Assembly (NCBI RefSeq): GCF_006345805.1 | Contig: NW_021836129.1 | Span: 1 to 64,000 of the forward strand | DNA: 64,000 nucleotides | Source: Octopus sinensis | Taxonomy: Eukaryota | Reading direction: 5' to 3' | In this document: positions 9,990 through 63,598 of the stretch, in pieces | How the letters are laid out: each line of letters opens with the position of its first letter | Position numbering within the stretch: the first letter of the stretch is position 1 | Notes under the pieces: model-generated | Database searches by the model: none | Told to the model about the DNA's origin: nothing | What the model saw: only the letters and a program-made list of their open reading frames with translations | Program-made: the position numbers and the translations under genes

Positions 9990-10664
9990 GATGAGTCATA
10001 TTCATGGTTACTCACAATTATCGACGTTTATTCTAAGTATGCCTACACAGAGAATTTGCGGAATAAAAGTGGGAAAGAAGTTGCGGAACAACTTAAAGAT
10101 TTATTTTTTGAAAACGGACCATGCAAATATCTTCAATCGGATAATGGGACAGAGTTTAAAAATTCTTACATACGGGAGATTTGTCAAAAATTCCAAATTC
10201 AGCAAATACATAGCCGACCAAATAACCCCAGGAGTCAAAGAATTGTTGAACGGTTCAATCAAACGATTACGAGAAGCTTATCTAAAATGATGTCGGAATC
10301 TTCAGAAAAATGTTGGACAAAGCATATTAAAGAGACAGTATATTTCTACAATTTAACCAAACATTCTTCTACAGGTTAAATTGTCACATTTTCAAACTTT
10401 TTAGGTGATGCTCCATTTCATAGATACCGCGGTATTAAAGGATCTAACCCATTAATTATTCATGATGATGTCTTTGAAGAAAAAACTGTTTCTAAACTTG
10501 GAAAAAACATTACTGAGGAAAGTGAGACTGGAGAACAAAGAAATCCATTAATTATGCATGTTGATGTTTGTGAAGAAGAAACTGAGAGCGAAATTATTGA
10601 AGAAAGTGATACTGCAAAAGAAGGAAACCATTATATAAAAGTTCATTTTCTCATTATTTTATAG
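9990..10664 (+). mobile_element. Retroviral-type DDE integrase without RT (KRBA2/SCAND3/Ginger-like), with a 30-nt intron
   Basis: IIDVYSKYA..LQSDNGTEF..HSRPNNPRSQRIVERFNQT..KHSSTG|intron 10375-10404|DAPFHRYRG; the 5' part is frameshifted. Confidence 0.85.
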
Positions 10665-10899
10665 ATCGCTACTATTTGAAATTAAAGAATATTTGAAATC
10701 CTATCCTCCTAAGAACTTGAAAGAAATTTCAGATATTATTTATGCTGGTCAAATTTCTTATGAAAATATATCCAATTCTTCTCGAATAAACAGTAAATTT
10801 GTTGAAAGTACATCTGAAAAAATTGAAACATTAAAAACAAATATGTCTATGGTAAATAATTTTCCTGTAATCCGTTTAGTGGTGACAACCTCGCTGGCC

Positions 10900-11163
10900 C
10901 ATATGTTACTAAAATAGATTTTGGTAATTGTGGATTCTTTTTCCAAATATGTAATGCTTGAACTGTCTGTGACAGAAATTGCAGATTTATTCCAAAGAAT
11001 TTTTTATTATGCCGGGCCTCGGCTTATTCTACACACTGATAATGAAAAAGAATTTTGCAATTCTCTAATGGATGTTCTATGTACTAAATATGGTATAAAA
11101 CATGTACGTGGGAGGCCTCATGCTCCTTTGATACAAGGGCAAGTCGAAAGGTTAATGATTTAA
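10900..11163 (+). mobile_element. Second integrase-core fragment
   Basis: IVDSFSKY..LHTDNEKEF..HVRGRPHAPLIQGQVER. Confidence 0.85.
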
Positions 11164-11309
11164 AATAGATTTGTAGATTTAATCAAAGCATAAAACGCTG
11201 GATATCATCGGCAAGTTCTTCTCAAAAATGTTTTGGACGATATTGCCCATTTTATATATTCATGGGTGTTGAAAATCCTGGAAGGATTGATGAAGCGGAA
11301 ATTTACAAC

Positions 11310-11949: not shown

Positions 11950-12690
11950 TATTACCTGGGAGCAACCATCAACTGTCGTGGCTCGTACGCAGATCATATA
12001 GCAAATTTATTACATCGGACCACCAATCATCCTCCAAACAGACAATGGGAAAGAATTCTGCAATTCGTTAATTGACGAAGTCTGTGAAAAATATTTGATC
12101 AAGCATGTGCGTGGTAGGGCACGAGCGCTCTGGATACAAGGGCAAGTAGGGAGGTTGCCTGATGGTTTTAATTTTTTAAGGTTCAAAAAAAGCATAAAAC
12201 GTTGGATATCTTAAGCAAGTGCCTCTCGTGGATAATCAAAGACATTGTTTATGATTACAATAACACAATACATTCCACAACCGGAAAAGTCACGTTCTAC
12301 TTGTTTATGGGTGCTCAAAATCCGAATCCAATAACGGAGTCGGAAATTTAACAATTATTATCGGGAGATGTCGACAGTGCAATCGTAGATGCACGTGAAG
12401 AAGCGTATTCAAAACTTCTTATCGCTGGAGAAAAAATGATACACAGGAGAAGATGGAAATATAATGAAGATTCCATAAAAGTCGGATCTACAGTATTACT
12501 AAGGTATTAATTTTTTAATACATTTCCAAGACAAGACAATGATGCCAATATTCGAAGGTTCCCATTATACGATGGATTATCAAACAACAAATATGTTGTG
12601 GTAGATCAATAAAATGACATGTACTTGATCGAAGATGAGAATGGTGAAAAAACTAACGTACATATACCAAGAATTACAAAAATTGACTAA
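11950..12690 (+). mobile_element. Third integrase fragment (C-terminal half) with a 27-nt intron
   Basis: KHVRGRARALWIQGQV..DYNNTIHSTTG..KVGSTVLLR|intron 12504-12530|QDNDANIRR; internal stops elsewhere. Confidence 0.75.
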
Positions 12691-13154
12691 CGATTTTGTT
12701 TAAAATTTTTCATCTAAATTTTTTTAAGAATTGGAAGCCCGCATAGGGTGAGGGTTAGTTGTTTAAGTTTTGAGTTAGGGTTAGGAGCAGACGAAGCTTT
12801 TATATAGAATCTAGAATTTTTAAAACAAAGATGGAAAATCAGATTTCCGGCAAAATGTCAACATTTGAATTTTATGCACATAGGGGAGGCCAAAGTTAAA
12901 ATTAAAATAAAGCATTTCGGAACACCAATTGAAAAGTCAATATTTTACAAAAATTTAAGGATTATGAATAATAAAGAGATTAAAAAGTAATATTTTACAA
13001 AGATTTAATCAAATTTTCATCAAAACAAAAAAATACAAAAAAATAAAGTTGATAAATCATGAAAATTCAATAAAAATGAATATATACAATAGAAAGAAAA
13101 TCAATTAAAAAGATGCATTCAATTGAGATTAAACTATACCATTTACAACTCTAT

Positions 13155-13370
13155 TTTGCAAGTACGAAATTTAATTTGCGGTCAGTAAACTCATTCCTGC
13201 AAATAAGAAATGATTTTTGCGGTTAAGAAAATCGATTTTGCAATCAAGAAAATTAATTTGCGGTCGTGAAAGTCGGTTTTGCAAGTGGGAAATTAAATTT
13301 GCGGCTAGGAAAATCGATTTTGCTAGTAGGAATACTACCTTTGCTAGCAGGAAATTCAATTTTGCAAATT
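13155..13370 (+). repeat. Left subterminal array: 11 TTTGC motifs at 20/21-bp spacing
   Basis: GC cores at 13158, 13178, 13199, 13219, 13240, 13260, 13281, 13301, 13322, 13343, 13364. Confidence 0.9.
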
Positions 13371-13449
13371 CATTTTGTATAACCTTGACGCAACATTAAT
13401 GCGTTTAAACAATATATAAAGTATTTTTGCGTTTAAAATTAAATTAAAA

Positions 13450-14577
13450 ATGGCACAAAATCGAGAAGTCTCCGAAAATTCACAAGAAAATGGTACAGAA
13501 GACATTTGCATAAACAGACAAGGAAGAGGACATTACGGAAAATATTCAATGGAAAAACGGAAATTGATCATAGACACACACGATAGAGATTGGCGCTCTT
13601 TATGCAGGTCTTTGGGAGTGAAAGAAAGGACCGCATATTATTGGATTAAAAATAAAAAAATTGAATTACTTCCTAAAGGAGGAAAGATTTGGAGTAAAAA
13701 AAGTGAAGAAATTATATCTGCTCTATTAACTTGGATTGAATGCGATTGCCAGATCTCATTGGTCGAATGTACTGAAAAAATTCAAGCTCAATTCAATGTT
13801 ACTGTTTGTGTAAATACAGTAAAAAATTGGCTTGATGGACAATTAATTTCATTGAAATCAATTCGGCCAGTCACAATAAACATGAATACAGAGGAAAATA
13901 AAATAAAAAGAATGGAGTATTTAACACGTCTTTTGAATGCGAGATCTAAAGGAAGAACTATAATTTGGATAGATGAGTCAAATTTTAATTTATTTTGTCG
14001 TCGTAAAGAAGGACGTTCAAAAATTGGATGTCGGTCTATTGTTCTTGCACCCAGTAGCAGAGGGTCAAATTTACATTGTATAGCTGCAATGTCATCGTCA
14101 CAAATATATAATTTTAAGTGCAGAAGAGGCTCATATACAGGGGAGTCCTGTAAAACATGGTTTAGGCAACTTATTAATGAATGTGATGCATCAGGAGTTA
14201 CACATCCAACATTCGTAATTGATAATGCTCCTATTCACAGTCAACTTGAGTCTGTAATAAATCCAGGAGAAAATAGTGAATTATTAAGACTAGCGCCATA
14301 TTCTTATTTAATCAACCCAATAGAACTTGCTTGGAGTTCATTCAAAGCTGAAGTAAAGAAGAGAATTCGTGAAAATATGGATATAATTATAAATTATAAA
14401 AAAAATGCAGAGGGACTGTCAATAACCGAATTCAGAATGAGAATCTTGGAAAGGATTGCAATTGAGGCAAAAGAAGTATTAACTCCACAAAAGTTAATGG
14501 AATTCTCGAATCATGTGGAGAGATATTACCCCTCAGTTATTCGATGTGAAGATTTAACTGACAATTCTTATTTGTAA
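13450..14577 (+). CDS. IS630/Tc1-like transposase, 375 aa, DD33E
   Basis: WIDESNF / VIDNAPIH / PYSYLINPIE triad with 33 residues counted between the second D and E; N-terminal HTH-like region. Confidence 0.95.
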   Translation: MAQNREVSENSQENGTEDICINRQGRGHYGKYSMEKRKLIIDTHDRDWRSLCRSLGVKERTAYYWIKNKKIELLPKGGKIWSKKSEEIISALLTWIECDCQISLVECTEKIQAQFNVTVCVNTVKNWLDGQLISLKSIRPVTINMNTEENKIKRMEYLTRLLNARSKGRTIIWIDESNFNLFCRRKEGRSKIGCRSIVLAPSSRGSNLHCIAAMSSSQIYNFKCRRGSYTGESCKTWFRQLINECDASGVTHPTFVIDNAPIHSQLESVINPGENSELLRLAPYSYLINPIELAWSSFKAEVKKRIRENMDIIINYKKNAEGLSITEFRMRILERIAIEAKEVLTPQKLMEFSNHVERYYPSVIRCEDLTDNSYL

Positions 14578-14584
14578 TAAAAAT

Positions 14585-14802
14585 TTCTTGCAAAATAGAA
14601 TTTCTCACTTGCAAAAATGGTTTTCATGACCGCAAATTTAATTTCTTGATTGCAAAATTGGTTTTCCCAGTCGCAAAATTCATTTACTATTTGCAAAAAT
14701 GATTTTCCTAACCGCAAACCGGATTTCTTACATGCAAAATTGCCATTCTTGACTGCAAATTTAATTTCCAGATTGCAAAAATGATGTTCTCAGCTGCAAA
14801 AT
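14585..14802 (-). repeat. Right subterminal array (inverted): 11 GCAAA motifs at 20/21-bp spacing
   Basis: GC cores at 14590, 14611, 14632, 14652, 14673, 14693, 14714, 14734, 14755, 14775, 14796. Confidence 0.9.
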
Positions 14803-19732: not shown

Positions 19733-20834
19733 CAGTCCGACCTCTAAATGGGGCACTAAGTTCCTCAAATCAGAGGTTTCCCCAAAAAAGAGGTTTTTCA
19801 AAAAGCTCAATAAATAAAGAAAAAGAACATTATTTTTTAAAATAATCAGTTAATTTTTCTCCATATTTATAATTTTTTTGAGCCAGGATATAAAAATGTC
19901 TCTTGTCATCCACGCATTTTTAAACAAAGAGTATAAAATTCCATAAATTTCGGGAGAAAATTTTTTGAAACATCTAGGATTTCTATATTTTCCGATTATT
20001 AATGGTTCAAATTTTTCTCCAGTGTAACTACAGCATAGATGAAGAGTAACTTTATCTTTACTCCTTTTAAAGCCCCGTGTCGAATCACCAGTTTTCACGA
20101 ATGATTTACGTGGGGTAAGTTTGATAAAGAGAGAAGTTTCGTCACAATTAAAAATGTTCTCCTTTCCATATTGTTCAACTTTGATATTTAATTCTGATAA
20201 AAAATTCAAAATTATCGCATGATCAGCAGATGCGGATTCGCCTGACAATGTTCGGAATTTTAATTCATGCCTCTGCTTGAATTTTTCTAACCATCCATTT
20301 GAAGCTTTAAACTTGTTTAAGCCCATTCTCGAAGACACAGTTAGGGAAATTTTTTTTAAAGAGTTCCAGAAACTGGAACATTCTGATCCCTTAGACGCTG
20401 AAAAATATCAAGAACTTTTTCATCAAATCCGTTTTTATTTTCACTCAATGATGAGGAAAGAAATCCTTTTTTGATAAATGAAAGAATATTCTTTTTTATA
20501 CGAAAAATAGTTCCCTTGCTAGTATTGTACATTATGGATAATCTCCTCTCAGAATGTTCTTTCTTTAAAAGATGCTCAGCAATCTTCAACTTGGTTTCAT
20601 AATTCAAAGGCATTACACAAGAAATTTGAAATGAAACGTGTCTTAAAATATTAATTTTTTAAATTGGTATAATTAATTTTATTTAATAAAAAATCAATGC
20701 CCCGAATAGAGATGTTAACATTAATTGATTTTTTATAATTTGGTTAAAAAAATTTATAATGCCCCAAAACAGAGTTTTCCCCAAAAAAGAGGTGCCCCAC
20801 CCCTGAAGGTGCGCCCCAATTAGAGGTCGGACTG
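19733..20834 (-). mobile_element. pogo/Tigger element, internally deleted
   Basis: TIR CAGTCCGACCTCTAA.TGGGGC, TA on both sides; HTH (NYETKLKIA..TSKGTIFRIK), ASNGWLEKFKQRH, NCDETSL; 1-nt frameshift near 20356; 3' half of the DDE domain missing. Confidence 0.92.
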
Positions 20835-21230
20835 TAGTCAGAATCGTTGAATAAATTTGCAATTATTTTTGTGAAGAACAAGTTGTATGGTCTTAATAAT
20901 GTCAAATCAGCATCACATGTGTGTTCTATCGTCTTCTAAAAGTTACAGTTGAACCGCTGCCCCAATAGGAATCCGCCCCAAATACAAAGGTTATGATAAT
21001 TGATACCATTTTTTCAACTTTTTCTTTAATTACTTTAAATAAAATAACACTTAAAAATTAAAAATCCATTTTATTTATTAAATAAAAAAGTAATCGCTAA
21101 TTTCCCTTCCAATTACATTTTTCGTCAATTTCATGCTTCGTTCATTTTAAAAACATAATATTCACTAGTACGCTGAATAATGAATTTTCTAAAAGATTCA
21201 TTATATTCATCGTGTCTTTTATGTTATAAT

Positions 21231-23011
21231 TAGGGCAATTTAAGTTAAAAAAGTTAAAATATATGAAAATGTGTATTTTGGCTTAAAAGTAAAAATAAAG
21301 TATTTTTTAAATGAAATAGTTACTTATTAAAGAAAAAAATAAAGTTAAAAAGTTAAAAAAAATTTTTTTATAAAGTTAAAAATTTTAACTTTATTTAAAA
21401 TAGCGCGTGGGTGTTTAGTATGCCAAGAACTGCAAAAACAATGTATTTTAAGGCAAAAAAAATTGTTATTGAATATCCGCTGGAGTTTTTATTACGAGAG
21501 AATGGCGAGTTGCAATGTCAACTTTGCTTATGCACAGTCAGGTGTGAGAAAAAGCATTTTGTGAATTCTCACCGAGAATCGAAGAAGCACTCAAATTTAT
21601 TAAGTTTTTACAAATTAATATAATTTTTAGAGAATAATTTCTATCAGCCTTGTTTGGACGAGTTACCCAATGATGACTGGTCAATGCAAGTCACTAAAGC
21701 ATTTATTCAATGCGATATACCCTTGCATAAATTGACTATGCCTCCTCTAAAGAATTTATTCAAGAATACTTCTTTGCCTCTTCCTTCCCAATACAAAGCA
21801 AGAATGTGCGTTAAACAATTGAAAACTGAATATATTGTATTATTTCAAGAAAAGTTTAGGTTTATGAATATATAATTTTTTAGAAATCAACTTGTATTCG
21901 CCATAAGTGACGAGGTCACTATTCGTAGTCAAAAATTTGTTGCAGTTTTAATGGGGATACTTAAAAATCCCGATAAAACTTATTTGATTTCTTTCGTAAA
22001 AATTGATAAAACTTCTACCAAAGAAACAATTATTCAAATTGTTGACGATACGATTAAATGCGTTTTAATTGAAAGACAAAATTTCCTTCTCCTAATAACA
22101 GATTCCGCTAAATATATGCTAGCAGGTTTTAATTTAACATATAATTATAGCTGGAAAAGTTCTTAAGCTTTTATATCCAAGGTTATTTCACGTAACTTGT
22201 GTTGCTCATCTGATGCATAATTGTTCAATGAAAATCAGGACTATTTATCCTGAAATTGATTCTCTTATTGCATCAATTCAAGCGGCAATAACAAAAAATA
22301 ACAAGAGAAAACGACTATTTAATGAAATTGGAATTCCACCTCATGTAGTTTTAACTAGATGGGGTACTTGGCTAACTGCTGCATTTTATTATGCAAAAAA
22401 TTTAATACATGTGATAAACATTTTCAAAACAATTCCTGATGATGGAATCATTGTTCAGGCTGCAAAAAATAGCCTAAGAGATGAATCTCTAGTAAAAAGC
22501 TTAAGTTCTATTGTTAGAAATTATTCGACAATTCCAGGTAAAACTAGTTTAATAATAGCAGAATTATTGTGCAAATTTGAAAGTTCTCACTCCTCAATAG
22601 AGTTAGCTTACAATGAGCTAAAGAATTTAAAATTTGACGACGAATCAGATATAATTGAAAAATATTTGAATGAACGATTACAAAAAAATGATTTATGTCA
22701 AATTATAAGAATGACAAATTCATCAATTTCTCCTGAAGAATATTGTATGCTTTTAAAGTGTCAGCCTTCATCCTCTTCCATAGAACGATGCTTCTCTCAA
22801 ATTAAAAACTTTATGAGGGATAACAGAAATTTTAATATTGAAAATATAGAGAATTATGTTATATGTTTGTATAATAAATGATTCTTAAGTTAAAATTTGT
22901 TAGGTTAAAATTTTTGTTTTATAGGTTAAAATTTGGTTATTTTTAGGTTAAAAAGTTAAAATTTTTAGGTTAAAAAATCGAAGTTTTTAGGTTAAAAAAA
23001 AAATTGCCCTA
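21231..23011 (+). mobile_element. Full-length hAT transposon (CGGBP1-like family) with intron-containing transposase
   Basis: TIR TAGGGCAATT, perfect 8-bp TSD GTTATAAT (21223-21230 and 23012-23019), subterminal GTTAAAA repeats. Confidence 0.95.
21420..22881 (+). CDS. hAT transposase, 461 aa after splicing introns 21604-21630, 21860-21883 and 22126-22150
   Basis: Removing three GT-AG introns (27, 24, 25 nt) joins four ORF-track pieces without a stop: CQLC..HRESKKH zinc finger, ISDE, TDSAKYM, TCVAH, TRWGTW, SIERCFS. Confidence 0.9.
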
Positions 23012-23142
23012 GTTATAATACACAATTTCAGTATCATTACATCTAAAATATGAGTCACCAAATGTTCAAATTGAATATTTTCGTAAATATTTTAACTGAA
23101 TTTTTGTTGGCAAAATTCTTTTCACCAGATATTGCTCTAAAA

Positions 23143-24227
23143 CAGGCCTGGCCAACCCAAATCGCATCGCGGGCCACTTTGTCCAAATGAATCCTTTCCG
23201 CGGGCGCATATACATGTACATACTAAGGATAGATATCAAAACAACACAGATAATATCAAAACAACACAGATAAGATTTTATTTAGTAAAATAGCATTCAG
23301 TCCAATTATACGTATCAATGAGAAATCTGTTTTTCTTTATCTTCACTTAATTTTTTCAAATCAACTTCACAATTACTAGTTGCACATCTTAATTGGTTTT
23401 CTAAGTTTTTATCTGTTAAAGAAGATCTATATCTACTTTTACTAAACTTTAATTTCGAAAAGAATGATTCACATACGTAAGTAGATCCAAAGGAGCTTAC
23501 AACTCTTTGTGCAAAAATTCTTAAGTTGGGATATTTTTCTGCAGTCACATATTTGTTATAAAAGTCAATTTTGGATATAGTAGGATAAACAAGTCTTAGT
23601 TCACTGTTGCACTGTAGGTCAATTATTTCCGTCTGCAAAGTATTTGAAACAATAGAAACGTCAACATGAAATGGAGAAGAAAATGTTTCAAACATTTTCT
23701 CATATTTTTTTAGTTCCGAGAATCGACTGTCAAATGCTGCAGCAAGATTTTTTATTTCATCAGCGTACTTGAAGAAATTTTTACAATGGCTGATTTTAAA
23801 TTGATTTAGCGTTGGAAAATGTTGATCATTTCCATTTCTTATTTGACATTCAAACAATGACAATTTCATTCGAAATGCTTTGACTTGATGGCATGCATTA
23901 GTAATCAAATTATCCTGTCCTTGTAACTCCTTGTTTAATTGATTAATTTTTTCGGTTATATCTACCAAAAAGCACAGATCTAGCATCCATTCTTCATCAT
24001 TTAATTCAGTTAAAATTTTCCTTTTCTTCATATTGATAACAGCTACAAAAATAGATAAACTTTAAAATTTATTAAACTTATAAAATTTATCTTTATTTAT
24101 TAAACTTAAGAAAAATTTATCTTGAATGTATTTATAGGTTAACTACATACAAAATTTCTCTCGCGGGCCGCACCAAACTCCATCGCGGGCCGCATGCGGC
24201 CCGCGGGCCTTGGGTTGGCCAGCCCTG
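23143..24227 (-). mobile_element. Buster-type hAT deletion derivative
   Basis: TIR CAGG.CTGGCCAACCC, perfect TSD CTCTAAAA (23135-23142 and 24228-24235); 238-aa C-terminal ORF (W.LDLCFLVDI..FGSTYVCESFFS). Confidence 0.95.
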
Positions 24228-25730
24228 CTCTAAAAGATAGTTCATGGCGTTTTTAAAGCGGTCTAGCCATCCATTAGAGCCTTTGAGCTGGTAAAATTTA
24301 TCCGAGTCTCGATATTTCTGGCAATTTTTGAAGTTAAACATTCGTACATTTAAATTCCATTTTGGATCAAATTCCTGAAAAGTTCAAAAACCAGACGATC
24401 GAGTTTCGATGATAGATCTGATTCATAGTTTTTGTTTTGGACTACGTCAGTAATAGGATTTGAATCAAATCCTTGTTTAGTTTTCATTTTTATTCTAGAT
24501 ACTGTTCCCTCCCAACTTTAAAAATCTTTGATATTTAACTTTTGGATATGGGGTTTGCCGACGATTCCATTTTTTATGGCATGACCACTAAACCACACGC
24601 TATAATTAAAAATAAAATAATGCATAAAAATTTATTTAAAATTATTTAAAAAATGTCCCAATAAGCGGGGTCGATAATTTTTAAATTTATTATTTTATTG
24701 GTAGAAAATTTAATAAACTTTTATAAAATATACTCCAGAAATTAAAGTGCCTCAAATACAGAGGGTGCCTTAAGTCCGGGGTTTTATTGGGGCGAGGTTG
24801 GACTGTATTACGTTTTTGGTTAACTTTAATTAACTTATCTGTGATTTGATGTTAATAGATTTTTGTGATAAATTATCTCGTCATATAAAACCACCACATC
24901 ATTAATATTGAAAGAAAAACCAATTATTTATTCTAATTAATTATAAACTTTGATTAATTTTGTTAAAAAATTTATCTTTTCTAATTTATCATTCCTAAAT
25001 TCGCCTGTTACTTATTTCAACAAGATGTCAATATCTAAATTAAATTAGATTTTTGATTAAGTAAATACAGACTGTGAGCCCAACTGTAGACATATCTTCA
25101 TTTCTAACAAACTTACATTACTTGGCATACTTTCATTCTAGAATACAAAACACAGGGAGTTTTAATGTTTTCACATTTAGTTCCAATTTAAACTAATATC
25201 CATAGTCAGCTTCATACAATCAAAGTCTAATCTGATTGACATTTAAAATTTTGTGGTTTCTAAAAAAAAGAGTTAACGACGGCCCACTCGATTCACTATT
25301 TTTAATTCTGTTGATGATTATAAGACATCACTTCTTTAAGACTTGTACTCAATCTAAGATCAACAATCAATCGCCACAATTGAGGGTCATTTGATGTGCT
25401 TTTTGCTATCGTCATCGGCTTTATAAATCCATGTTATTGGGTTGTTTTGTCGAACAAAAAAACTCCATCGTGTTTCAAACTTTCATTTCAAATTTTAGAC
25501 AAGAACAGATTTAATGACTTTAAGTAAAATATTGAAAATTTTCAATTTGAGTAATTTAACATTTGTCTATATTTTTCCCAAATTATATGACAGAATTTCT
25601 TCAGAAAATAAATTTTTAGAAAACCACACAAATAAAACTTTTTATTAGATTTTATTTAATTAAATCAATGATAATTAAAACTTTCAGGGGATTCTAATTT
25701 AATTTATTACACTCAAACTAATCTTTTTGA

Positions 25731-30899: not shown

Positions 30900-31390
30900 T
30901 TAATATAACACCAAATACACTTTTGGACGACGAAGTGGCTAAGGTGGGTTAAGGACTGTCATTTAGATGTACAACAATGAGATCGACAGTCTGTTGGATG
31001 TATTGGAAGTCGAGAGGGATGGAGATGACTTATACGTGTCCTATGGACTATTTAAGTATTAGGGGCTGCTTATTTATAGTAATCTTAAAAAGCAGCAAGT
31101 GGAACAGTCCGACCGTATGACCGACCTACAAAGTGAAATCATGACATGTGAGGACTTGAAAGAACAGGTTTTTGGACATCATAACTTCTAGAAGAATTAC
31201 TGCTTGCTCTGTCTAAAAGCTCACAGCAAGAACTATTGAGAGAGGTAAAAACTCAGAAGAGCAAAAACCTCTATAGCAACCAGATAGTATTGTTGAAAAG
31301 CGATAGCTGTGACAAGGAACCAATTTTTGGTTATTCTATACGCAAGTTTGTTGATTGTGCTAATTTCGATTGGGGAAGCAATTAATTGAT
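30900..31390 (+). pseudogene. Unidentified intron-containing gene fragment (copy at about 59500-59990)
   Basis: LLDDEVAK|23-nt intron 30944-30966|MYNNEIDSLLDVLEVE..|24-nt intron 31056-31079|NLKKQQVEQ..; frame could not be extended cleanly either way. Confidence 0.45.
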
Positions 31391-31659
31391 GAATAATTTA
31401 ATAGGTTATTATTCGCAATTATTTCCCAAATATTTTATTGAACTTTAATCATGACACAAGTATGCTCACAAATCCGAAATTAATAATTATTTAATGATGG
31501 AATTTTATTATCAGTTCGTTTTCAACGGCATTTCTTCTAGAATTAGTCAGATTAAAGAGATTAAATTTGAGATAACTCAATTTTAAGGAACTAAATAAAA
31601 ATGTACAAATAATTAGCATAATTACACATATATAAAATGAAACTTAACAATGAATAATA

Positions 31660-32710: not shown

Positions 32711-32851
32711 TTTGGGCCTATCTGTTAAAGACACGTGACTGCTAAGTTTATTTTGAAATGGTGAATTAAGAAAATGATGTCAATCAAACATAGTGTTTTT
32801 TGTGTAATTAAATAAAAGTTTTGATGGTAGGAGATAGTGAGTTATTAAATA

Positions 32852-47600: not shown

Positions 47601-47800
47601 CCCTACACAAAATAGACATAAATGACCGAACCAATCATTTTCCTGTCGTACCAACCTCCGTTTCCGAGACACTGTCGAATTAATTCGATTGGAGTTTGAG
47701 CTCCCCAGATTTCTAGTGCTGGTATATTCAAATCATCAATAAAAAATATTCGTTTTTTCCCCAGAGGAGGGCCGTAGATTCACTTCCGACTGTCTGGGTC
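41616..47800 (-). pseudogene. DNAH1: Axonemal inner-arm dynein heavy chain (DNAH1-like) pseudogene, AAA3 to C-terminus
   Basis: FIDDLN, AMGP.GGGRN, PTPNKTHYTFN, LNNILNS, YLGPFT, SLGQGQGPRAE, QNCHLA.SWMP, KYPVLYEESMNT, YKTLTRAGTLS.TGHSTNF; many 23-29 nt introns; TGA at 44435-44437 where Trp is expected; frameshifts, large internal deletions and a hAT insertion. Confidence 0.92.
45528..47291 (+). mobile_element. Degenerate Buster/GTF2IRD2-type hAT inserted in the dynein pseudogene
   Basis: Ends CAGGGTGTCAAA and TTGACACCTCTG; LTRNTVAE, AIDETVD, CTDGAPNM, RWLS, FGSTYLCEQLFS; stops and deletions. Confidence 0.9.
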
Positions 47801-49839
47801 CAACAAATTTCAAAACCTCGTCGAAAACCTTAAAGAACAGTCCAAATGCAGTGAAAGACTTCTAAATGATCTGAAATGTCGTTTTAATTCACTTTTGGAC
47901 AAAGTTTCAAGTTTTGAACAGTTGCACTGCAAGGCAATGACAGAACTAAAAATGCAAAACAACGAACTTTGTGTATTTTGTTGATTTAAAATAAGCATAA
48001 AATCGAACTAAATTTGACGGAGAATGAACCAATGATTTCTGAGTTTAGAAGAATGAATTTAGAAATTTCCGACAGGCAAATAATGACGGGAGAATTCTAC
48101 GGAATTTTATTTGAAATAATCAGACGGGACCAATTAGATTCCAAAGCAACCACACATGTCTGATTTGGGTAGATTAGGTTTCTGGTGGAACAGTGGCTTT
48201 TCAAATTGACTCATGATAAACGAATGGATGTTAGAAAGGCCTAAGGACCTGATTTGGGTAGATTAGGTTAAGATTTTCAAAGTCATAAAATTAGCTTATT
48301 TTGTAGATTTAAATATGAAAACAGCCTTTTTTCTTGATTAAAGTTTGTAATAAACATTTATTCTAATCATGCTTTTACGAAGAATAAAAAAAGTAGAATA
48401 AAAGTTAAAACAATTTTGATAAATTTTTATGGATTTTAGTATTTGAAATTTCCTACAATCAGGCAATGGAACCGAATCCAAGAACTCTTATGTGACAAAA
48501 GTCTGTGACAAGTTCTGCATTACTCAAATACATATGAAACTAAACAATCCAAAGAGTCAGGGAATTGTCTAAAGATTTAATCAGATCATCACGGAGTTTA
48601 TTGTATTTATTTTATAATTAACAAGAAGCTTCTTATTTAGAGATATTATGTGACGATTACTTTTTTCTATTTACAAAAGTTTGAATATTCATACTGGTAA
48701 AATGTAACTATTGTTTCAAAATTTTCTATCAATTTTGTGAACGTTTAATACAGTGGGGAGTATGTTTATAATAAATAGTCGTTAATTTTTGATTTGACGA
48801 TAATCAACATTAATAAAATTTATCATGATTTCACCTTTGGCTCGGTCTCACTCTCGCCACATATTACAAAGGGAAACATTAGGATTAAATATTCATTTCG
48901 GCGTCCTGACCTCACTATTAGTTTTTAAAAACTAGTAAAAACTTTTTAATACCAAAAAATGATTCGTCTCTTAAGTCAGATGCCATGCTGACTGCAATCT
49001 ATATTATCTCTTGATGCTCGTTGATTGAGTCTTTTATTACTCAGAGGATGTCGCTCCATTGCACTTTTTGAGAGGTCTGGCCGAGAGAAGAGGAAGAAGA
49101 GACGAAACAGGTGTTTAGAGTGCTGCCCATTGTTTATTCCGAAGGTTTGTTTATCCCGAAAATATTAGCAAAGTCTGAAACACATTGAGCCGGCGGAAGT
49201 CGAAGTGAGCTTGTAATTGAAATGTTCAGAACATCTCAGAAGAATTGGATTAGTTGTAATGGTTTGGAGATCTATGACAAAAATGATAAGTTACATTTTT
49301 GGAAAATTCTATTTTGCTGAATAAAAATAATTAATCATGTCCTAATATTGTTTCTGTAAAATTAAAGTTTCTAAATGTCGCCGAAAAAATTATGAATATA
49401 TTCTGATATATATTCATTTGGAACATTTTTGGTCAGTTTTTTCGTGATTGTCACGGTTTTGGAAATCCCGGTCGGACCCACGCAAAGCACTTGGTCAGTC
49501 GGATTAAATATTTACAGGTTTTTTGTTTTTTAGAAGAAGATCAAGTATGTACAATGATCTTATATGGTCAACGGTTGGCACAGTTATGTCAATGAACCTT
49601 TGTTGGGAGGAATTGAGAATTGGTCTCTATTTTGGAATCAACATTTTTTATATTTATACTTCATTTGGCAGACTTTCCATTCATTTGACATATGTCTAAG
49701 AAATATTCCATTATATAATTCTGCCTTAATACATTTTTTTAATTATTGAATTCAAGTTACCTTCAGAATCAAAATGTCGAAATAATGTCGGAATTTTGAC
49801 CGAAAAATGTGAAATAAAATAATCGGATTGTTAATTAAT

Positions 49840-50617: not shown

Positions 50618-52562
50618 CTACGTACTACTGCTATTCAAACAGGGAATGAAAAAATACAAAAATATATATTGGGCGTCTCTCCTCATGCGGGAATATATAA
50701 TACTCGTTAGAAACTCGTGGTTAACCCCATCCAAGTCAGTATTTAGGGGAAGTGAAGAAGGCTCAGTGGACTGTAAGTAGGCTTGCACTAAAAATAGAAA
50801 AAGAAGGCAAACTGTCACGAGCGTGTTGTTGGATAAATGTGCGAGTTTGTGAAGGTGGAGTCCAACTTGGGTTGTTTCTCTGAAATGTGAGAATAAAAGC
50901 ACCGAAAATGCAAGGAGTGATATTTCGAGTTTATCATGAAGAGTGGTGTGGTCAGGGGGGACATGAAGGAGGGCATAATCCAGCATATCTCCACCTGCGT
51001 GTGTACGGAGAGTATGTTGGCAAACAAAATGTACAAGTCGTGGGATTTGATGTCGAAAAAAGAAGAAAAGAAATAAAGGAGCAGTAAATGGTGCAGCCAC
51101 TTGTTGTATCAAATAAATCTGTAAGTGTTGAATAAGTACAACTAAATGTGATTGAAAGAGGAGTGTAAAATGTCGATAAGTGTGGAGTGGTTGATGTTGG
51201 TCGGGGGAGAAATGATATAAATGGGCTACCAGATGGGGGATAATGTGGTGTGGATTAGTAGTGGTAGACTATGATAAGGAGAGAGAAAACAACCTGTCGA
51301 CTACTAGCAAAGGCATAAACAGCAGCTGGAATATAAATAAACAAAGACAGACTAGTGATGGCAATAGCAGTCACAATTCTGGGGACTTGAAGAATAGTGT
51401 CATGAAGGAGTGTAAGTACAGCAAACAAGAGAAGGACAGCCCCCGCAAAATAAGTAGCATGTCTTGCCAACACACCCACCAATGGAGAAGAAAAACATTG
51501 AATATACTGATTGGCAAAAGGATAGGCCAAAGCAAGTCGTTCCTCCAATTCATGATCCAATTCAGAGTAGTTACGAAGGGAATAGTAAGCAATAGGAGTC
51601 CAGCGGTGTCGAAATATACTGGAAGGAGCCCTACGAATCATCTAAACTAATCAGACAGACATACCTCAGCATATTCGAAGCACACATACAACAGTTGGAC
51701 AACAAACAAGAATGGGGATAAAACTAAGCCAAACAAGCACATCACCACCAACCGTGTTCTAATTCTACCATATTAGAGAAGGCTACGTTCTCTCCGCATA
51801 TTCCCTCAGACCCCCCACTCGGTATATCTCTGCTATACTCACCCTTGTTGAGAATACAGTCCCCTGCACACACGACGGAAATAAGAGCTTAAACAAATAC
51901 AATTCCATCAATTTTGTAAAGCAAGGAATAGATTCAAATTCTCTTATTAGTCCTACCATAAAATTGGTATGTCGGACAATCATGCTGTGGCAAACTTACA
52001 TTATACTTACATTCTTACGTAATTCATCTAGGCCACTGTCCTTCTCCATTAGTCCTCTCTCAATCCTCTCCCATGCAGTCACGTACAGTTCATTCTACCA
52101 TCACATCCACTCACTCACTGAATTTATAGACATATCCTTCAATAATCTCCTCATATTCCACAAATGGGGCAGTCTCCATAATAGAATACATATTTTGACA
52201 ACACTGAATATTCCCACTCCCACCACTACACACATTTCCCCTCTACTACACACTCTCAGACATGACTCCACTGGTAGGAATATGTCTGATATGTTCCCTT
52301 CTTTCATATTCCACCAATCAAAGTCCACACATTTATATACGTACATTACAAACACACACAAAAACACAATTCGTCTATATTCATTTAGTCTTTAGTACAT
52401 TATATTGAATAGTTCGTCCACTATTATGCACCATATTCCTTTCTTTCGGTAGTAGTCGTACACTGAGCTTACCAACCAGTCCCTTTCCGTAGTCGAGAAG
52501 GTCCCACTATTCGATGTGTTCAACAGAGGTTTCGACAAGTCATCCAGATCCACATCATCCAT
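50618..52562 (-). CDS. ATG9: Autophagy protein ATG9, apparently intact, with micro-introns
   Basis: MDDV..VYDYYRKKGIWCI..|..CVDF..IVRHTNFMVGL..RWTPIAYYSLRNYSELDHEL..APFTAPLFL..GGDM..KLEISL..NNPSWTPP; 24-nt introns at 52375-52398, 52095-52118 and 51995-52018. Middle introns and the exact 3' end were not all traced. Confidence 0.9.
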
Positions 52563-53199: not shown

Positions 53200-55079
53200 C
53201 AGTACGACCCCGGTTTGGGGCAGACCCCATGGGTGGGGCACCCTCGGGTTTTGGGGCACCCCCGCTTTTAGGGGCAGTTTTTGAAAACAGTAAATTTTTC
53301 ATTCTATTATTTATTTTTGATGACCCCGGTTTGGGGCACTTATTTAATTTATTTAATTACAAAATGTTAGTTTATTTATTAATTATTAATTAATACTATT
53401 ATTTCACGTGTTTATTTTGACTTTAGTATGGTTCGTAAAAAGAATTCAAAGATTAATTATGAAACAAAAATTAAAATCGCTAAAGATATAAAACATGGTC
53501 AATTTTCAGAAAGAGATCTTGCTAAAAAGTATAAAACGAGCAAAGGTATCTTTTTTAACTAATTATTAATTACAGGTACTATTTCTCGCATTAAACAAAA
53601 TTTTGTTTATTATTTTGACGCGGGATTAACTGAATCCGATAGAATCAAGGAATCACATGATCCAAATAATGAATTAGATAGATTAGTTTTTGAAACTTTT
53701 CTACGTCTGAGAGATGAATTTCTTCCAATTTCTGGAACTATCTTAAAACTGATTGCAAAAAATTATCTAAAAAGATAAATTATGAATCATTTAAGGCATC
53801 AAATGGATGGCTAGACCGGTTCAAGAAAAGACACGAGTTGCTATTTAAAACTATAAGTGGAGAAAAGAATTCATCTGACCTTTCTACGGTTTCCAATTTT
53901 TTTGCTGATTATGACAACTGTTTGGAAACTGTAGGAAGTGAAAATATTTTTAACTGTGATGAAACAGCTTTATACATAAAGCGAACGCCGTCGAAATCTT
54001 TTGTTCAATTTAATGACAAATGCAATGGAATTAAAATGAGCAAAGAGAAAGTTACCCTTCTCCTTTGTTGTAATGCACTTGGTGAAAAGTTAAAACCTCT
54101 ATTAATTGGAAAATTCAAATCTCCTAGGTGTTTAAAAAATTTTAACGCTGAGGATCACGGAGTACTATATGCTGCATCAAAAAATTCGTGGATGACTAGT
54201 GATATTTTTGGGAAATGGTTATGGAAAGTAAATCAAGATATGATCAATGAAAAGAGAAAAATTGTCTTAATACTGGATAATGCGAGCTGTCACAGAAATA
54301 CAGAATATTCCAATGTTTATTTACTTTTTCTTCCCAAAAATACGACCGCTTTAATTCAACCCCTAGATATGGGAATAATAAAATCCTTCAAGTCCCTCTA
54401 TTTCAATAAACTGATTGATTTTACTCTTATATTTGAAAAAGAACAGCTTTCTGATTTGAATTTGAATAATGTCAATCTTAGACAAGTCATTACAGTTGTC
54501 GGGGAGGCATGGAAAATGATGTCAGAGACAACGATAATTAATTGCTGGCAGAAAATAAATGAAAACAGATCAAAAATTTCGGATAATGTACAGTTGGACG
54601 AAGAATTAATAGATGACGTGATTTCAGATGTTATTTCAATGGATTCGACAGATATTATTGAGGACAAAATTACTTATGATGGATATGAATCTAAAAAATC
54701 ATCAATTAAAGAAATCATAAACATCGTGAATTCTCTAGAAGATAATATTTTCAGTACATGTCCACAATTTTTGAAAATCTACTACGAATTTAGAAAAAAC
54801 CTATCAGGAGAACTGAAAAAAAACCAATTCGGTGAGAAAATTACTGATTACTTTTAATAGTATTTTTTGTTGGATTTATTAAAATTTTTAAATTTTATTA
54901 AGAAAGGACTATGTTAGAATTTTTATTAATATTAAATAATTTTAATTTATAGTCTAAAATGCAATAAAAATCTATTGAGGAGAAAATAAAAGCAAAAAAT
55001 CTTTACCCTCGCATTTTGGGGCACCCCCGCTTTTTAGGGCACTATGATAAAAATGCTGCCCCAAACCGGGGTCGTACTG
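53200..55079 (+). mobile_element. Full-length pogo/Tigger element
   Basis: Perfect 24-bp TIR CAGTACGACCCCGGTTTGGGGCAG, TA on both sides. Confidence 0.95.
53428..54857 (+). CDS. pogo transposase (DD29D) with 30-nt intron 53546-53575 and one 1-nt frameshift in an A6 run near 53757-53762
   Basis: MVRKK..TSK|GTISRIK..ASNGWLDRFK..NCDETAL..LDNASCH..QPLDMGII; 466 aa if one A is restored. Confidence 0.85.
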
Positions 55080-57915: not shown

Positions 57916-60252
57916 GAACCTATCTACAATTTTAAATCTAAACTTTATCTCCGACATTAAATTTGTACTCAGTATTGTGGACATTCATTTTCCCTGAGTT
58001 TATATTAATCGGATTTATATTAAATATAATTTTTTTCGACTAAGACAATTAAAATCGTCTAAATATAAATTATAAATTAAAATACTTTAATTTTTAATTT
58101 AATCTAAATTTAAAGAAATCTCTGAATTTTCAAAATTATTTTTAATATTTTCATAATTTTAAAATTTTACGCTTATCCTTCGATATTCTTCGACAATAAA
58201 AACCTGACCTTCAAGGACCAGCACAGTTTGGAGAAGACAATCCCAATATTTAACCGCATACTGTGAAAAGATCCCAGTATTGCTTATTTCAGGACATTTC
58301 AGGTCATTGTGGAGGCAGACATCTTCTTTACTCTGCCCCGATTGACCAAGAACATCGTGTTTTTTTATTTGATCATTTCAGTACGTTCGGTTTTTCAGAC
58401 TTAGACTACGACTCGAGTTAGACACTGCCCACGAACTTTTCTTTTTTGTGAGTGGCAAGCAGGCAGTCTACCTCAATCAAAAATGAGTTGTCTGTACTCG
58501 GTTTGTGCGTGTGTCTATTGGCAGAAATACAAAGACAAGGACAGATTTCTATATATCACATACGCCAACAAGTTGGTTTCTATGGCCGAAATTGATATTT
58601 AACCTATTCTTTTTTGTCTCTAATCATTCTGTTAGCATGTGATCTAATTATTTTACCAATTTCTCAAAAATATTGATTGGCGATGTGCTTAGTGGAGGGC
58701 ACTCATGTACTCACACTGACACACCAGATTAATCAAAACTAGCTTCATTTATAACAAGCTTCCTTTATAGTTTATATTCAGATTAGTTTACATTTTGATT
58801 CGAGTCAATATAATGCTCATGTTTTGAATTTGTGGAAATATTTTCGCAAATAAATCTGTCAAAAATGTTTTTGTTCTTTTAACTTGCAATTGATTTATGA
58901 TAATTATTAAACCACACTTGGAAAAAAATCGGAGATCATATCGTTAATTTCCATAACGACACATTTAAAGGCCCATTTCCCAGACCAGTGGAATGTCTCA
59001 TGATTTCAAAACACCTCTGGCCAACAATAGGAAAGTCGACATTTTTCACTTCCAACAGAAAAAGATCATGGAGTGATAAAAAGTAAGAAAATGAATGAAA
59101 TTGATCTACAAATGAACTTTAAGAAATTCTGTTGTCCAAAGTGAGAAGACGGTTGATGACAAGCAAACAAAAAGAGGTTATAACCCCCTTCAATTGCAGA
59201 AAACACTTCCCGGTGGCCAAGAAAGTAGGAGTTTCCTTCACTTACTGAATAACTCAACAAACTAGAACGTTTTAAGGCAGCAAAAAGATCAAAAATTGGA
59301 AATAAACGTGGGAGGATTAGTTAGCCTTCCTCTCTGTCTTGAGTGGAAATGACGAATGTGTAGATGAATTTGGTATAAACGAGCAACTCGGTGAAAATGA
59401 ATGCTAGAAATATCCACGACTAAGGACCGAAGCGATAGCAGGAATCTCTGAAGTGTAAATTGAGACGAAAGTCCAAACGAGTGTAAAAAATAGTCATTAA
59501 TATAACACCAAATACACTTTTGGACGACGAAGTGGCTAAGGTGGGTTAAGGACTGTCATTTAGATGTACAACAATGAGATCGACAGTCTGTTGGATGTAT
59601 TGGAAGTCGAGAGGGATGGAGATGACTTATACGTGTCCTATGGACTATTTAAGTATTAGGGGCTGCTTATTTATAGTAATCTTGAAAAGCAGCAAGTGGA
59701 ACAGTCCGACCGTATGACCGACCTACAAAGTGAAATCACGACATGTGAGGAATTGAAAGAACAGGTTTTTGGACATCATTACTTCAAGAAGAATTACTGC
59801 TTGCTCAGTCTAAAAGCTAACAGCAAGAACTATTGAGAGAGGTCAAAACTCAGAAGAGCAAAAACCTCTATAGCAACCAGATAGTATTGTTGAAAAGCGA
59901 TGACAAGGAACCAATTTTTTGTTTATTCTATAAGCAAGTTTGTTGATTGTGCTAATTTCGATTGGGGAAGCAATTAATTGATGAATAATTTAATAGGTTA
60001 TTATTCGCAATTATTTCCCAAATATTTTTATTGAACTTTAATCATGGCACAAGTATGCTCACAAATCCTAAATTAATAATTATTAAATAATGGAATTTTA
60101 TTATCAGTTCGTTTTCAACGGCATTTCTGCTAGAATTAGTCAGATTAGAGAGATTAAATTTGAGATAACTCAATTTTAAGGAACTAAATAAAAATGTACA
60201 AATAATTAGCATAATTACACAGATATAAAATGAAACTTAACAATGAATAATA

Positions 60253-61303
60253 ATGATTCTGATTGTCCTGTTGATGCTACAATACACATCAAGTATTATT
60301 TTATTGACACCAAATAGGTCCCGGTGAACTGAAGGTGAAGTATGATAAGAATAGAGTAATCTATTTTTATTTTAATTCAGATGTTCATGTTGGATGCTGT
60401 CAAAAATGTTGAATGATTATTTAACTAGCGTAGGCACTGTCACACCTAGTGAATATTTCGTTTGTCAATGAAGGAGAAGATATTTCTGTTGAGATTGTTG
60501 AGTTTGAACTCTATGTCAATCAAATTGTAGTTCAGCTAGTGATGAAGGATATCATGTTATTAATAGAGTTGGAAGATTGAATGTATTCCTTAATAGTTCA
60601 ACGAATGGTTAAGGTAAATATAACACATTTATAGTCGATGGAATGTTTAACGATTCCAAATGTCAAGTATATTCAGTGTTTTAATATAAGCAATATAAAC
60701 CCGGAATTATCATATACAAATTACTCAAAATAATGAATTTTGAAGATATTGATGACCCTGACAGTATTTTAAACCCGGAAAATAAATTGTGGTCTTTTTA
60801 TTTGTAATTATAGAAATGTTATCCCAAGTCCAGAATTGAATCAAAGATTCAGAGAATTAAGATTTGAAAGAGAAAGTATTGTTGAGGCATTGAGACTAAA
60901 TGAAGAAAATACAAGTGAACACCAAAAAACTAATTTTGAAGATGATGAAAATATTGACAATACAATTGGAAACCAAGAAACTAATTCCGAAGATGATGAA
61001 AATATTGACAATACGAGTGGAAGCCAAGAAATTAATCCCGAAAATGAAGAAAATACAAACAATACCATTGGAGACCAAGAAATTAATTCTGCAGCTCAAA
61101 ACAATACAGTTAGTGGTGCAGAGGTCGGTAAAGGAATCAGGAAAGGTATATTGCTTTTATGTCCCTTCCCTTTTTGGAATAAGGGTGTAATATATAATAG
61201 TGGATATGAGTTTTTATTTCATGGCTGGTGCAGTCTTGTGCATGCTGATTCTTCTTTAATCCCGATACTTTTACTAATTCAGGACACAATAACTAAATTT
61301 TAA
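60253..61303 (+). pseudogene. Duplicate of the 31660 secreted-protein gene with a lost splice donor
   Basis: Intron-4 donor GT is AT at 60513; the next GT (60515) would shift the frame. Confidence 0.6.
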
Positions 61304-62357
61304 TTTGGGCCTATCTGTTAAAGACACGTGACTGCTAAGTTTATTTTGAAATGGCAAATTAAGAAAATGATGTCAATCAAGCATAGTGTTTGTTTGTGTA
61401 ATTAAATAAAAGTTTTGATGGTAGGAGATAGTGAGTTATTAAATACAGTCTTACCTTTTTTGGAACGGACCTTGAGGCGTGGAAAACCTCTGTTTTTGAT
61501 ACATTTTTGAGATTTGGAACATTTCGAAAATTTATAAGAAAATTTATAAAATCCTTACCAAAAAGACCTCATTCCAAACGGAGGTTAGACTGTATCCCAA
61601 TTTTAATGAACTAAATAAAAATCAGAAATACTTCGCTTAATTACACAGATATAAAATGAAACTTTACGCTAAATAATTTTGAATCTGACTGTGCTGTTGA
61701 TGCTAAAAAACTTATTAAGAACCTGTTTTCACTAATAAATTTGTATTTTAGATATTTAAGGACTATACATAAGAATATTTCCGAAAAGTGTAAAACGTTC
61801 TAGAACCTGGAAAAAAGTTATAATAGATTAATTTAAATGAATGATTAATTCTTTGCAATCCTTGGTATATTGGAGTATAGTATCTAATATATAGTTTTTT
61901 GGTGCTTTTCACGTCAAAAGCAAACATTAATGTTGACGCATCAAGTATAATCTCGAAGCTCTAAAAATTAGCTTTAAATCCACAAATAAGCAAGGATTAC
62001 AAAAAATACAAAATCCCTTTCGACAAAGAAAACTGATCGTTGAACATTCAATTAATGGAAAATCTAATAAAGAAATTATCTAAATATGCCTCAATCCTCA
62101 TAAGTCGAATACTTTTCTTGAGAAAATCCAGAGATATTGAGAGCAAATCTCGTGGTGATAATTATTCTTACAAATTGAATGATTAACATAAGCAATATAT
62201 TTTTGGTTTGGCCAATGATAATCTATCATTGACACTATTAAAGTTAAAAAACATGGTTTTTTCTAAATTTCGGATAAATATTAGTCCGGATGCTATTAAC
62301 CAATGTCTTAAAAATTTTCCCTACATGCATCAACACTAATGCTTGATGAGTCAAGAC

Positions 62358-63598
62358 CAGGGGTTCTCAACTTTTTTAGCTCATGGGCCAAATCGATAAT
62401 TAAGAATATCTTTACGGGCCGCACAAAAAATATTTTATGTTATTAATGAAAAGAAGGCTTTATTAAGTAATAAAAATCAATGCGAGACTTGATTCTGTTT
62501 GGCGTCTATTATTTTGTCAAAACAGGGAGTAAAAGTCGAACACGATGTGCGTAAAAGTTGATTTAGGTGTCCATCAGTCAATCGATTTCGATACTTTGTT
62601 TTTATTTGCGTAAGTTTGGTGAAAAGAGCTTCACATGTATACGTTGATCCGAAGACTGATGCATTTTTTTGAGCATTATCGACCAAGTTCGGATATTTCC
62701 ACTGTGGAATTCGACCCCAAAAATCCAATAGTTCACTTGACTTAAATAGCGCGGTAAGTTGTAAATCTGCCTGCATTTCAATTAGTTCCAGTTGATATAT
62801 GTATGGAGCGGTTGCAGCATCTGCTTCCATAGGTGACAAAAATATTTTCATAATAGGTAAAGCTTCTTTAAAATCATTAAAACGTGTTTCGAATTCATCG
62901 ATTAAGTCACTAATAACGCAGATATATTTTTGTAGGATCCATCTTCCCTGTGATTTGAAAGTATTGGGAAATGAATGGTAACTCTACTTTCAATTTGTAT
63001 ATTCCAAAGGTGTAGTTTTTCGATAAATGCAGAAACCATTCCGTACAATTCATGACATAGTTTGCCCTTACCCTGCAAAGAAGTATTCAAAATTGAAAGG
63101 TGCGTAGAAATATCTACCATAAATGCTAAATCTGCAATCCACTCCTTATCAGTAAGCTGAGGATAAAATATCTTATTGTCAATAAAATGCATAATCTCCG
63201 GGAGAAGGTCATAAAATCTAAATGCGATTTAGTTTAAATTTATATAACCTTTTTAGACATGCTGCCCGACTCAACCATCGTACAGTTGTATGCATAAGCA
63301 AATCTCCATACTTGGCGTCAACATCCTCGAGAAATATCTTGAAATTCCGATGATTTAAAGCACGGGATCGAATAAAATTTACGATCGAAATGACCGTTTC
63401 TGTAACATGGTCCATTTTCATAGATTTCGCGGATAAATTTTCTTGATGCAGGATGCAGTGATGCCAAATCACAGGACTCAACTCATCATCTACTCGCCAT
63501 CCAGCTACGAGACCTTGAAACCCAGTTTTCCATCCAACCATAGAAGGACATCCATCTGTAGCAATTGAAAACATTTTTAAAGGATTCAAATGTGCCAT
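62358..63598 (-). mobile_element. Buster-type hAT (longer copy of 33765 element) with 31-nt intron 63218-63248; 5' end not present
   Basis: ATDGCPSM..HCILHQE..RALNHRNF..VRWLSRAACLKR|intron|FYDLLPEIMHF..WIADLAF..FGSTYTCE; shared frameshift near 62940. Confidence 0.9.

Follow-up and report, generated by a model that had tools for sequence, protein, structure and literature searches.

The 64,000-nucleotide stretch of DNA considered here (contig NW_021836129.1, positions 1 to 64,000, filed under Octopus sinensis in assembly GCF_006345805.1; hereafter, the window) contains mobile-element genes that are interrupted by GT-AG segments of only 24-31 nt. With a probability of about 0.8, these segments are ordinary ultra-short U2-type spliceosomal introns, each gained once in the lineage of its element and then copied together with it. 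The proposed carriers are two hAT families, one pogo/Tigger family and two rve-integrase families, and the data support their occurrence in four or more mobile-element gene families that are unrelated to one another. A sequence-only reading of the window had reported seven of them (I1 to I7) in transposon genes between 10375 and 63248, and all seven were found, with the same outer coordinates. Its description of several unrelated transposon families holds for the number of families, but the rve integrases, which have Polinton-like relatives, are probably not classical transposases.

Interrupted hAT, pogo and integrase genes

The segments were located by reading the elements in three frames, and their coordinates were fixed by exact search (Table 1). 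GT and AG form the ends of all seven, as well as of a further segment, I2', and of a candidate at 12504-12530. Retention of any one of the seven would lead to a premature stop, through an in-frame TAA or a frameshift. The earlier claim that each removal restores a conserved motif was borne out in part: an open frame returns in 7/7 cases and a gapless alignment to homologs in 6/7, the exception being I3, which lies in a variable linker. The claimed match in size to introns of the ATG9 and dynein genes is confirmed, the transposon introns measuring 24-31 nt against 23-29 nt for ten host introns in the window and 25-29 nt for three introns of a TOP1 gene on a related contig. At 18%, the GC content of the transposon introns is lower than that of the host introns (35%), matching the surroundings. 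AG directly precedes the donor in 6/7, and TNA branch-like motifs, followed mostly by T-rich ends, occur 12-17 nt upstream of the acceptor, which is a weak signal at 18% GC. The splice signals of the presumed host are themselves reduced (PMC13644364).

Table 1. Coordinates of the elements, introns and host-gene segments described in the text (a slash marks the junction left by excision)
Feature	Position	Strand	Description
Integrase A coding parts	9972-10374, 10405-10661	+	Pfam rve 1.5e-15
I1	10375-10404	+	30-nt GT..AG in rve integrase A; in-frame TAA inside; HSSTG/DAPF
I2	11151-11176	+	26-nt GT..AG in rve integrase B copy 1 (about 10860-11250)
I2'	12154-12180	+	27-nt GT..AG in integrase B copy 2; GQVGR/FKKSIKRWIS
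Candidate intron	12504-12530	+	27-nt GT..AG, C-terminal part of integrase B copy 2
pogo copy 2	19740-20836	-	internally deleted; continuous MYNTSKGTIFRIKKN at the I6 site, without intron
hAT element	21231-23011	+	complete; 11-bp inverted ends TAGGGCAATTT/AAATTGCCCTA
hAT coding exons	21420-21603, 21631-21859, 21884-22125, 22151-22881	+	
I3	21604-21630	+	27-nt GT..AG; linker between zinc finger and core
I4	21860-21883	+	24-nt GT..AG; gapless QEKFR/NQLVFAISDE
I5	22126-22150	+	25-nt GT..AG; gapless AKYMLA/AGKVLKLLYP
I7 twin	34623-34653	-	in the 98% segmental duplicate; donor lost, GT to TT
DNAH1-like axonemal dynein segment	44163-45458	-	six micro-introns; D6 domain against DNAH1 2e-57
Dynein introns	45430-45458, 45129-45154, 44909-44936, 44762-44788, 44612-44635, 44163-44190	-	29, 26, 28, 27, 24, 28 nt
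Second Buster-like copy	46486-46704	+	decayed; without intron at the I7 site
ATG9 segment	51642-52398	-	Pfam ATG9 1.9e-23; introns 52375-52398, 52095-52118, 51759-51786, 51642-51664
pogoC	53200-55079	+	full-length pogo/Tigger-type; 24-bp inverted ends, TA flanks
pogoC coding parts	53428-53545, 53576-54857	+	Pfam DDE_1 5.9e-39, HTH_Tnp_Tc5
I6	53546-53575	+	30-nt GT..AG in N-terminal DNA-binding domain; KYKTSKG/TISRIKQN
Buster-like hAT remnant	62480-63773	-	Pfam Dimer_Tnp_hAT; 5985 homologs
I7	63218-63248	-	31-nt GT..AG; VRWLSRAACLKR/FYDLLPEI (CLKR/FYDLLPEI)

The hAT element that carries I3, I4 and I5 is the sole intact intron-bearing element in the window, and its sequence looks autonomous. The inverted ends, together with an 8-bp target duplication (GTTATAAT, at 21223-21230 and 23012-23019), are those of the hAT superfamily, and the three splices yield an intact open reading frame (ORF) of 461 aa, from ATG to TGA. 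Over its whole length, the spliced product is colinear with 14 homologs (each about 455 aa), and it keeps the columns that are invariant or near-invariant across these 15 sequences, among them D147, E148, D211, H238, H241, W289, W292 and E430. The acidic residues, CxxH motif, RW motif and C-terminal region of hAT transposases are all present, the only Pfam match to the product being DUF659. No near-identical spliced hAT protein was found in the databases searched. The terms 'CGGBP1-like' and 'Buster', used by the sequence-only reading for its hAT subgroups, are kept only as labels.

The support for the three hAT introns is uneven. All deletions of 12-60 nt near each site that restore the full ORF were scored with a homolog profile, and chance values were calculated from f(GT) x f(AG) = 0.0022. 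At I5, the top score among 608 is shared by the GT-AG deletion and two equivalent placements (chance ~0.007), and at I4, the GT-AG deletion lies at most 0.4 bits below the top score, ranking 7 of 485 as one of seven near-equivalent placements (chance ~0.016). I3 is the sole GT-AG solution among 492 ORF-restoring deletions and ranks 62, which is about the chance expectation; it is accepted because a third splice is needed for an open frame and because it resembles I4. The I4 and I5 sites are crossed without an intron in 39/39 database hAT homologs, two of which were verified as uninterrupted ORFs on genomic metagenome contigs. A separate 21-nt in-frame GT..AG stretch lies at 22533-22553 of the element (GTAAAACTAGTTTAATAATAG), where the product is four residues longer than its homologs; its removal would leave the product three residues short of them.

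The pogoC element combines a TA duplication, inverted ends, a CENP-B-type helix-turn-helix domain and a DDE_1 domain, and its relatives are source-named as Tigger-derived, in line with membership of the pogo/Tigger group. The junction left by excision of I6 is gapless against 13 relatives. A search with pogoC returned proteins of 94-97% identity bearing the source name 'tigger transposable element-derived protein 6-like [Octopus sinensis]', which are encoded on the contig L007 (GCA_006345805.1, VCDQ01002911.1; record 99228-112428). This contig holds two pogoC copies that are 99.6-99.8% identical, so the family is young, and I6 is present in both, at 30 and 29 nt. A further contig, L008, holds a 55%-identical pogo subfamily whose intron of 25 nt agrees with I6 in site and phase and is unrelated to it in sequence. 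This site is uninterrupted in a copy on contig L009 and, within the window, in pogo copies 2 and 3; copy 2 shares 43-51% identity with pogoC by tblastn.

The sole frameshift in pogoC comes from the loss of 1 nt from the A-run at 53757-53762, which reads A6 in the window and A7 in both L007 copies, and one of these (copy B) has its own, different 1-nt homopolymer frameshift. Such shifts may be long-read assembly errors, and because they vary between near-identical copies, calling an element dead from a single frameshift is unsafe. Comparable 1-nt shifts in A- or T-runs occur at 53757-53762 in pogoC, 20355-20365 (-) in pogo copy 2, 46590-46605 in the second Buster-like copy and 5290-5310 (-) in the host gene ICMT. 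The predicted mis-annotation of intron-bearing elements is seen, on contigs of the octopus assembly, in the NCBI models P0049 and P0052, which bypass the micro-intron by way of invented introns of 241 nt and ~100 nt.

Two rve-integrase families carry further segments. Removal of I1 gives YNLTKHSSTG/DAPF, in gapless alignment with the database protein P0043 (YNLTKHSSTGDAP against YNNSFHRSIGMAP), and removal of I2 gives GQVER/FNQSIK, gapless against VERFNKTLK of the same protein, with a Pfam rve_3 match that crosses the junction. I2', which was not on the original list, has the site and phase of I2; the exons of the two copies are ~75% identical at the protein level (by eye), and the intron sequence has diverged. 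Excision of the candidate at 12504-12530 gives VGSTVLLR/QDNDANIRRFPLYDG and eliminates an in-frame TAA, but this placement is tentative, having been made without homolog comparison. Integrase A has no I2, and integrase B has no I1. In the window, both are decayed, multi-copy fragments, and no partner genes or element ends were recognised there. Their closest relatives (57-60%) are integrase-only ORFs, one of them source-named 'Gag-Pol', and a 37%-identical relative has a protein-primed DNA polymerase gene (DNA_pol_B_2) 6.6 kb away on its metagenome contig. They may be Polinton- or Ginger-type units rather than classical transposases. When the octopus assembly is set aside, the best named relatives of integrase A (57%) and pogo (41-47%) are found in an assembly of the microsporidian Dictyocoela muelleri (P0041, P0058, P0059, P0062, P0065 and others), which could reflect transfer between parasite and host, or contamination there too.

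The Buster-like hAT transposase that carries I7 is decayed, with frameshifts near 62985 and in a (TA)n tract near 63620 and an in-frame TAG upstream, and it has no match in the PDB. Of the 150 best among 5985 homologs, most align with the spliced product in one single stretch that spans residue 132; for P0169, this stretch runs 3-219 against 32-248. Another homolog, P0240 (51% identical), ends with VRWLSRAACLKR followed by YICLNRS, that is, seven residues past the I7 site, and then a stop. This is the ending expected when an ORF caller runs into an intron at that site, so I7 is probably shared by P0240. A duplication within the window (29465-34678 against 58060-63273, 98%) contains the I7 twin, a 5'-deleted derivative in which homology stops 25 nt upstream of the donor. 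The second Buster-like copy reads VRWLSLQKVVK-IFYLLRSEI across the site, its sole break being a 1-nt shift in an A-run.

Origin of the segments

Under the interpretation preferred here, each intron would be an insertion relative to intron-free relatives, arising once inside a transposon lineage; DNA-based movement of the element would then copy the intron along, and the transposase could be made only after splicing by the host. The sequence-only reading's further ideas, that such dependence could act as a control point, in the manner of the tissue- or stage-specific retention of P-element IVS3, or help an element to pass RNA surveillance, are speculative. Intron-free relatives are known for every site, as the sequence-only reading had stated for related elements, although I6, I2 and probably I7 also occur in diverged copies. 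Because these three are shared in this way, gains appear to be rare and subsequently inherited; the idea that introns are gained readily is not upheld, the shared sites in copies of 51-75% identity pointing to rare events. Site, phase, ends and size are kept while the interior diverges, which indirectly indicates splicing and fits selection for it. The gains probably took place within the present host lineage.

Several observations weigh against this interpretation. Splicing of the segments out of RNA is read from patterns in the DNA, and the identity of the host likewise rests on inference. Decay has affected most of the intron-bearing copies in the window, and these are thus uninformative on present function. 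The placement of I3, in a variable linker and not favoured by homology, cannot be told from chance. Database proteins are mostly ORF-based calls, so that intron-bearing relatives are under-detected and their apparent lack of introns is inflated. Finally, the closest hAT homolog (L003, 43% identity, from another sample) has a 46-nt intron near I3.

This last intron bears on the possibility that the transposon families brought their introns with them when they reached the host, vertically or horizontally, and that the introns then merely shrank to host size. The L003 intron lies in the same linker as I3, which may be older than the present host, and the age of I6, I2 and probably I7 is sufficient for copies of only 51-75% identity to share them. 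The L003 intron nevertheless differs from I3 in phase and is offset by 2-3 residues, and L003 has neither I4 nor I5, both of which are missing from all 39 hAT homologs. The presence of the same introns in homologs from other hosts, which the sequence-only reading had named as grounds for giving up its proposal, was looked for, with the outcome that I4 and I5 occur in 0/39 and the L003 intron near I3 shares neither its site nor its phase. Relatives aligned over the I6 site are uninterrupted, no match of the pogo search was seen to begin just past it, and the sole other bearer of an intron there, the L008 subfamily, belongs to the same assembly. An origin before arrival in the host is therefore considered unlikely. 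That the integrases and the Buster-like gene, at least, are domesticated host genes with host-gene introns is less probable still. It would account for the absence from the window of recognisable ends or partner genes for both integrases, and domesticated transposases typically acquire introns (bioRxiv 10.1101/656579), but the integrase and Buster-like genes are multi-copy, with stops, frameshifts and deletions in these copies, while inverted ends flanked by target duplications are found on both hAT and pogo, the latter with near-identical copies elsewhere.

The least credible alternative is that the segments are unspliced mutational debris in dead copies, with GT and AG ends arising by coincidence, and we give it hardly any weight. 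Many copies in the window are indeed dead, and in DNA this AT-rich, restoration of the ORF alone is expected to offer about one GT-AG rescue per disruption (for I3, 1 of 492). A window-wide scan for segments joining long ORFs also gave no excess of GT-AG over all 256 boundary pairs, by a criterion that is too permissive for AT-rich sequence. The placements are, however, base-exact against homolog alignments and fall into one size class throughout, and intron sites are conserved despite diverged intron sequence. The hAT element has a complete ORF and fresh target duplications, and where these genes are otherwise disrupted, the cause is a 1-nt shift in a homopolymer rather than an insertion of 24-31 nt.

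The mode of gain was approached in several ways. Origin by tandem duplication of an AGGT-containing segment finds no sign, self-identity at a lag of one intron length being not above background. For an introner-like family, the only near-copies within five edits in the window are the intron itself, its segmental duplicate and chance AT-rich matches, and a mobile 'micro-introner' family was rejected, since near-copies of the introns at unrelated sites are absent from the window. An unusual type of donor was also considered, GTT beginning 7/9 of the transposon introns in the window and that of L008, against 3/10 host introns in the window and 2/3 in TOP1; this was unconvincing. A bolder proposal is that dicyemid micro-introns are still arising by AT-rich insertions of ~25-30 nt at AG/G, with young transposon families dating the events and dependence on splicing being exploited, by host or element, to restrict transposase to certain stages of the life cycle. 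We regard it as doubtful; if true, it would offer a rare animal system in which to count recent intron births and test their mechanism.

Comparison with known intron-bearing elements

Spliceosomal introns in transposase genes are known from the P element (IVS1-3), maize Ac, medaka Tol2 and Drosophila pogo. As in these elements, the transposase mRNAs of the window would require host splicing, and the introns travel with the element; the difference is that the window introns are only 24-31 nt, the extreme size class of their host. The TLEWI elements, Tc1-like elements of bivalves, show lineage-restricted gain of 2-5 GT-AG transposase introns with a shared exon-intron structure, and their authors already argue that introns tie transposition to host splicing (bioRxiv 10.1101/656579). 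TLEWI elements have no inverted ends, are low-copy and are read as domesticated, whereas the hAT and pogo elements of the window keep inverted ends and target duplications, and pogo has near-identical copies. In plant CACTA transposases, families differ in exon-intron structure, a variation that can be placed on the family tree, and loss dominates (PMC4158355); since the outgroups of the window elements have no introns, gain is the more economical interpretation here. Introners (PMC9860276; PMC12130899), mobile elements that themselves generate introns, also link mobile DNA with intron gain, but in the opposite direction, since the window introns lie inside transposon genes.

The size class itself is that of the ultra-short introns of myxobolids, with medians of 22-27 nt, and of D. 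japonicum, which are similarly short and have reduced splice signals (PMC13644364; PMC6736024). Those papers treat host genes: introns in transposon genes are not described in PMC6736024 or PMC6543705, neither of which yielded a word starting with 'transpos' in term searches, or in PMC13644364, which mentions transposable elements only in passing. The dependence of transposition on splicing is an already published idea, and the dicyemid-type case itself is probably undescribed. Because transposon genes start without introns, every intron in one of them represents a dated gain. The host introns of this lineage are said to hold conserved ancestral positions, and the window would add clear cases of intron birth at 24-31 nt, of a kind that can be counted genome-wide. 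In annotation, a program that imposes a lower limit on intron length will render an intact element as a truncated or chimeric 'gene', as in P0049 and P0052.

Host genes and the source of the DNA

Three host genes were recognised by Pfam, encoding ICMT, ATG9 and a dynein heavy chain. The ten host introns used for comparison were set by continuity of frame and motif in a three-frame reading. In ATG9, excision of GT..AG segments of 24, 24, 28 and 23 nt produces a single frame, and the dynein segment contains the six micro-introns listed in Table 1. The window dynein is of the axonemal DNAH1 type and is well conserved with respect to mammals (2e-57), which points to a ciliated animal as host. Myxozoans are not known to have cilia, and a myxozoan host was rejected for this reason. 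Dicyemids live in the kidneys of octopuses. Reports of animal introns shorter than 30 nt are limited to myxobolid myxozoans and Dicyema (PMC13644364), and repeats make up 49% in D. japonicum (PMC6736024). The L007 contig, which carries a compact TOP1 gene at about 800-2860 with introns of 25, 29 and 27 nt, is taken for dicyemid-type DNA inside the octopus assembly on account of these micro-introns. The host of the window DNA is probably a dicyemid, with matching contigs filed under Octopus sinensis. L007, L008 and L009, all from that assembly, are probably parasite DNA in a host assembly, their proteins being labelled [Octopus sinensis] in NCBI and UniRef; parasite contigs filed under octopus in this way spread mislabelled proteins into both.

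The GC content of the window is ~31%, and the standard genetic code fits the reading. An alternative code was rejected after TGA-only and other stop sets had been counted: transposon ORFs end in TAA, TAG and TGA, and with the standard code, splicing yields products of full length. Remains of mobile elements crowd the window, alongside large internal duplications. By Pfam, the elements include rve integrases, a BED-finger piece, a Tc1/mariner DDE_3 domain, pogo DDE_1 domains (three or four copies) and hAT dimerisation domains. The Tc1/mariner element at 13153-14740 has inverted ends of ~148 bp (80% identical) and an intact DDE_3 ORF of 375 aa at 13450-14577, which is without an intron and serves as an intron-free control family. 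Deletion derivatives of hAT elements are nested within pogo fragments at 23060-24240 (-) and 35560-36400 (-), with GC-rich inverted ends beginning CAGGGCTGGCCAACC and CTAGACCAGTGGTTCTCAACC. Further duplicated pairs are 2-3247/15677-18955, 27384-29038/55080-56734 and, in inverted orientation, 6471-9221 against 39992-41767; such kilobase-scale duplications within 64 kb, at 80-98% identity, may reflect genuine segmental duplication or redundancy of the assembly.

The host genes show irregularities of their own. In ATG9, the one remaining in-frame stop could be removed by excising a 15-nt GT..AG stretch at 51985-51999 (-) (GTAAGTTTGCCACAG), either a shorter intron or a nonsense change. ICMT (4688-5766, -) has an in-frame TAG (about 5110-5112) at the position of an expected conserved Tyr, near 5030-5060 an intron-like insertion of 26-29 nt that lacks a GT donor, and near 5500 what may be a GT..AG segment of 18 nt. 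The DNAH1-like gene (42200-48000, -) contains internal deletions (for example, FIDPPQ runs directly into SLEDQLL near 43940). Around 44400-44440, it also has an in-frame TAA and a frameshift, and a Buster-like hAT has inserted into it at about 45560-47300; the gene is likely to be a pseudogene copy. In its D6 region, at 43006-43031 (-), an insertion of eight residues relative to DNAH1 (the ILGHFKIRCT region) overlaps a 26-nt GT..AG stretch whose excision breaks the frame.

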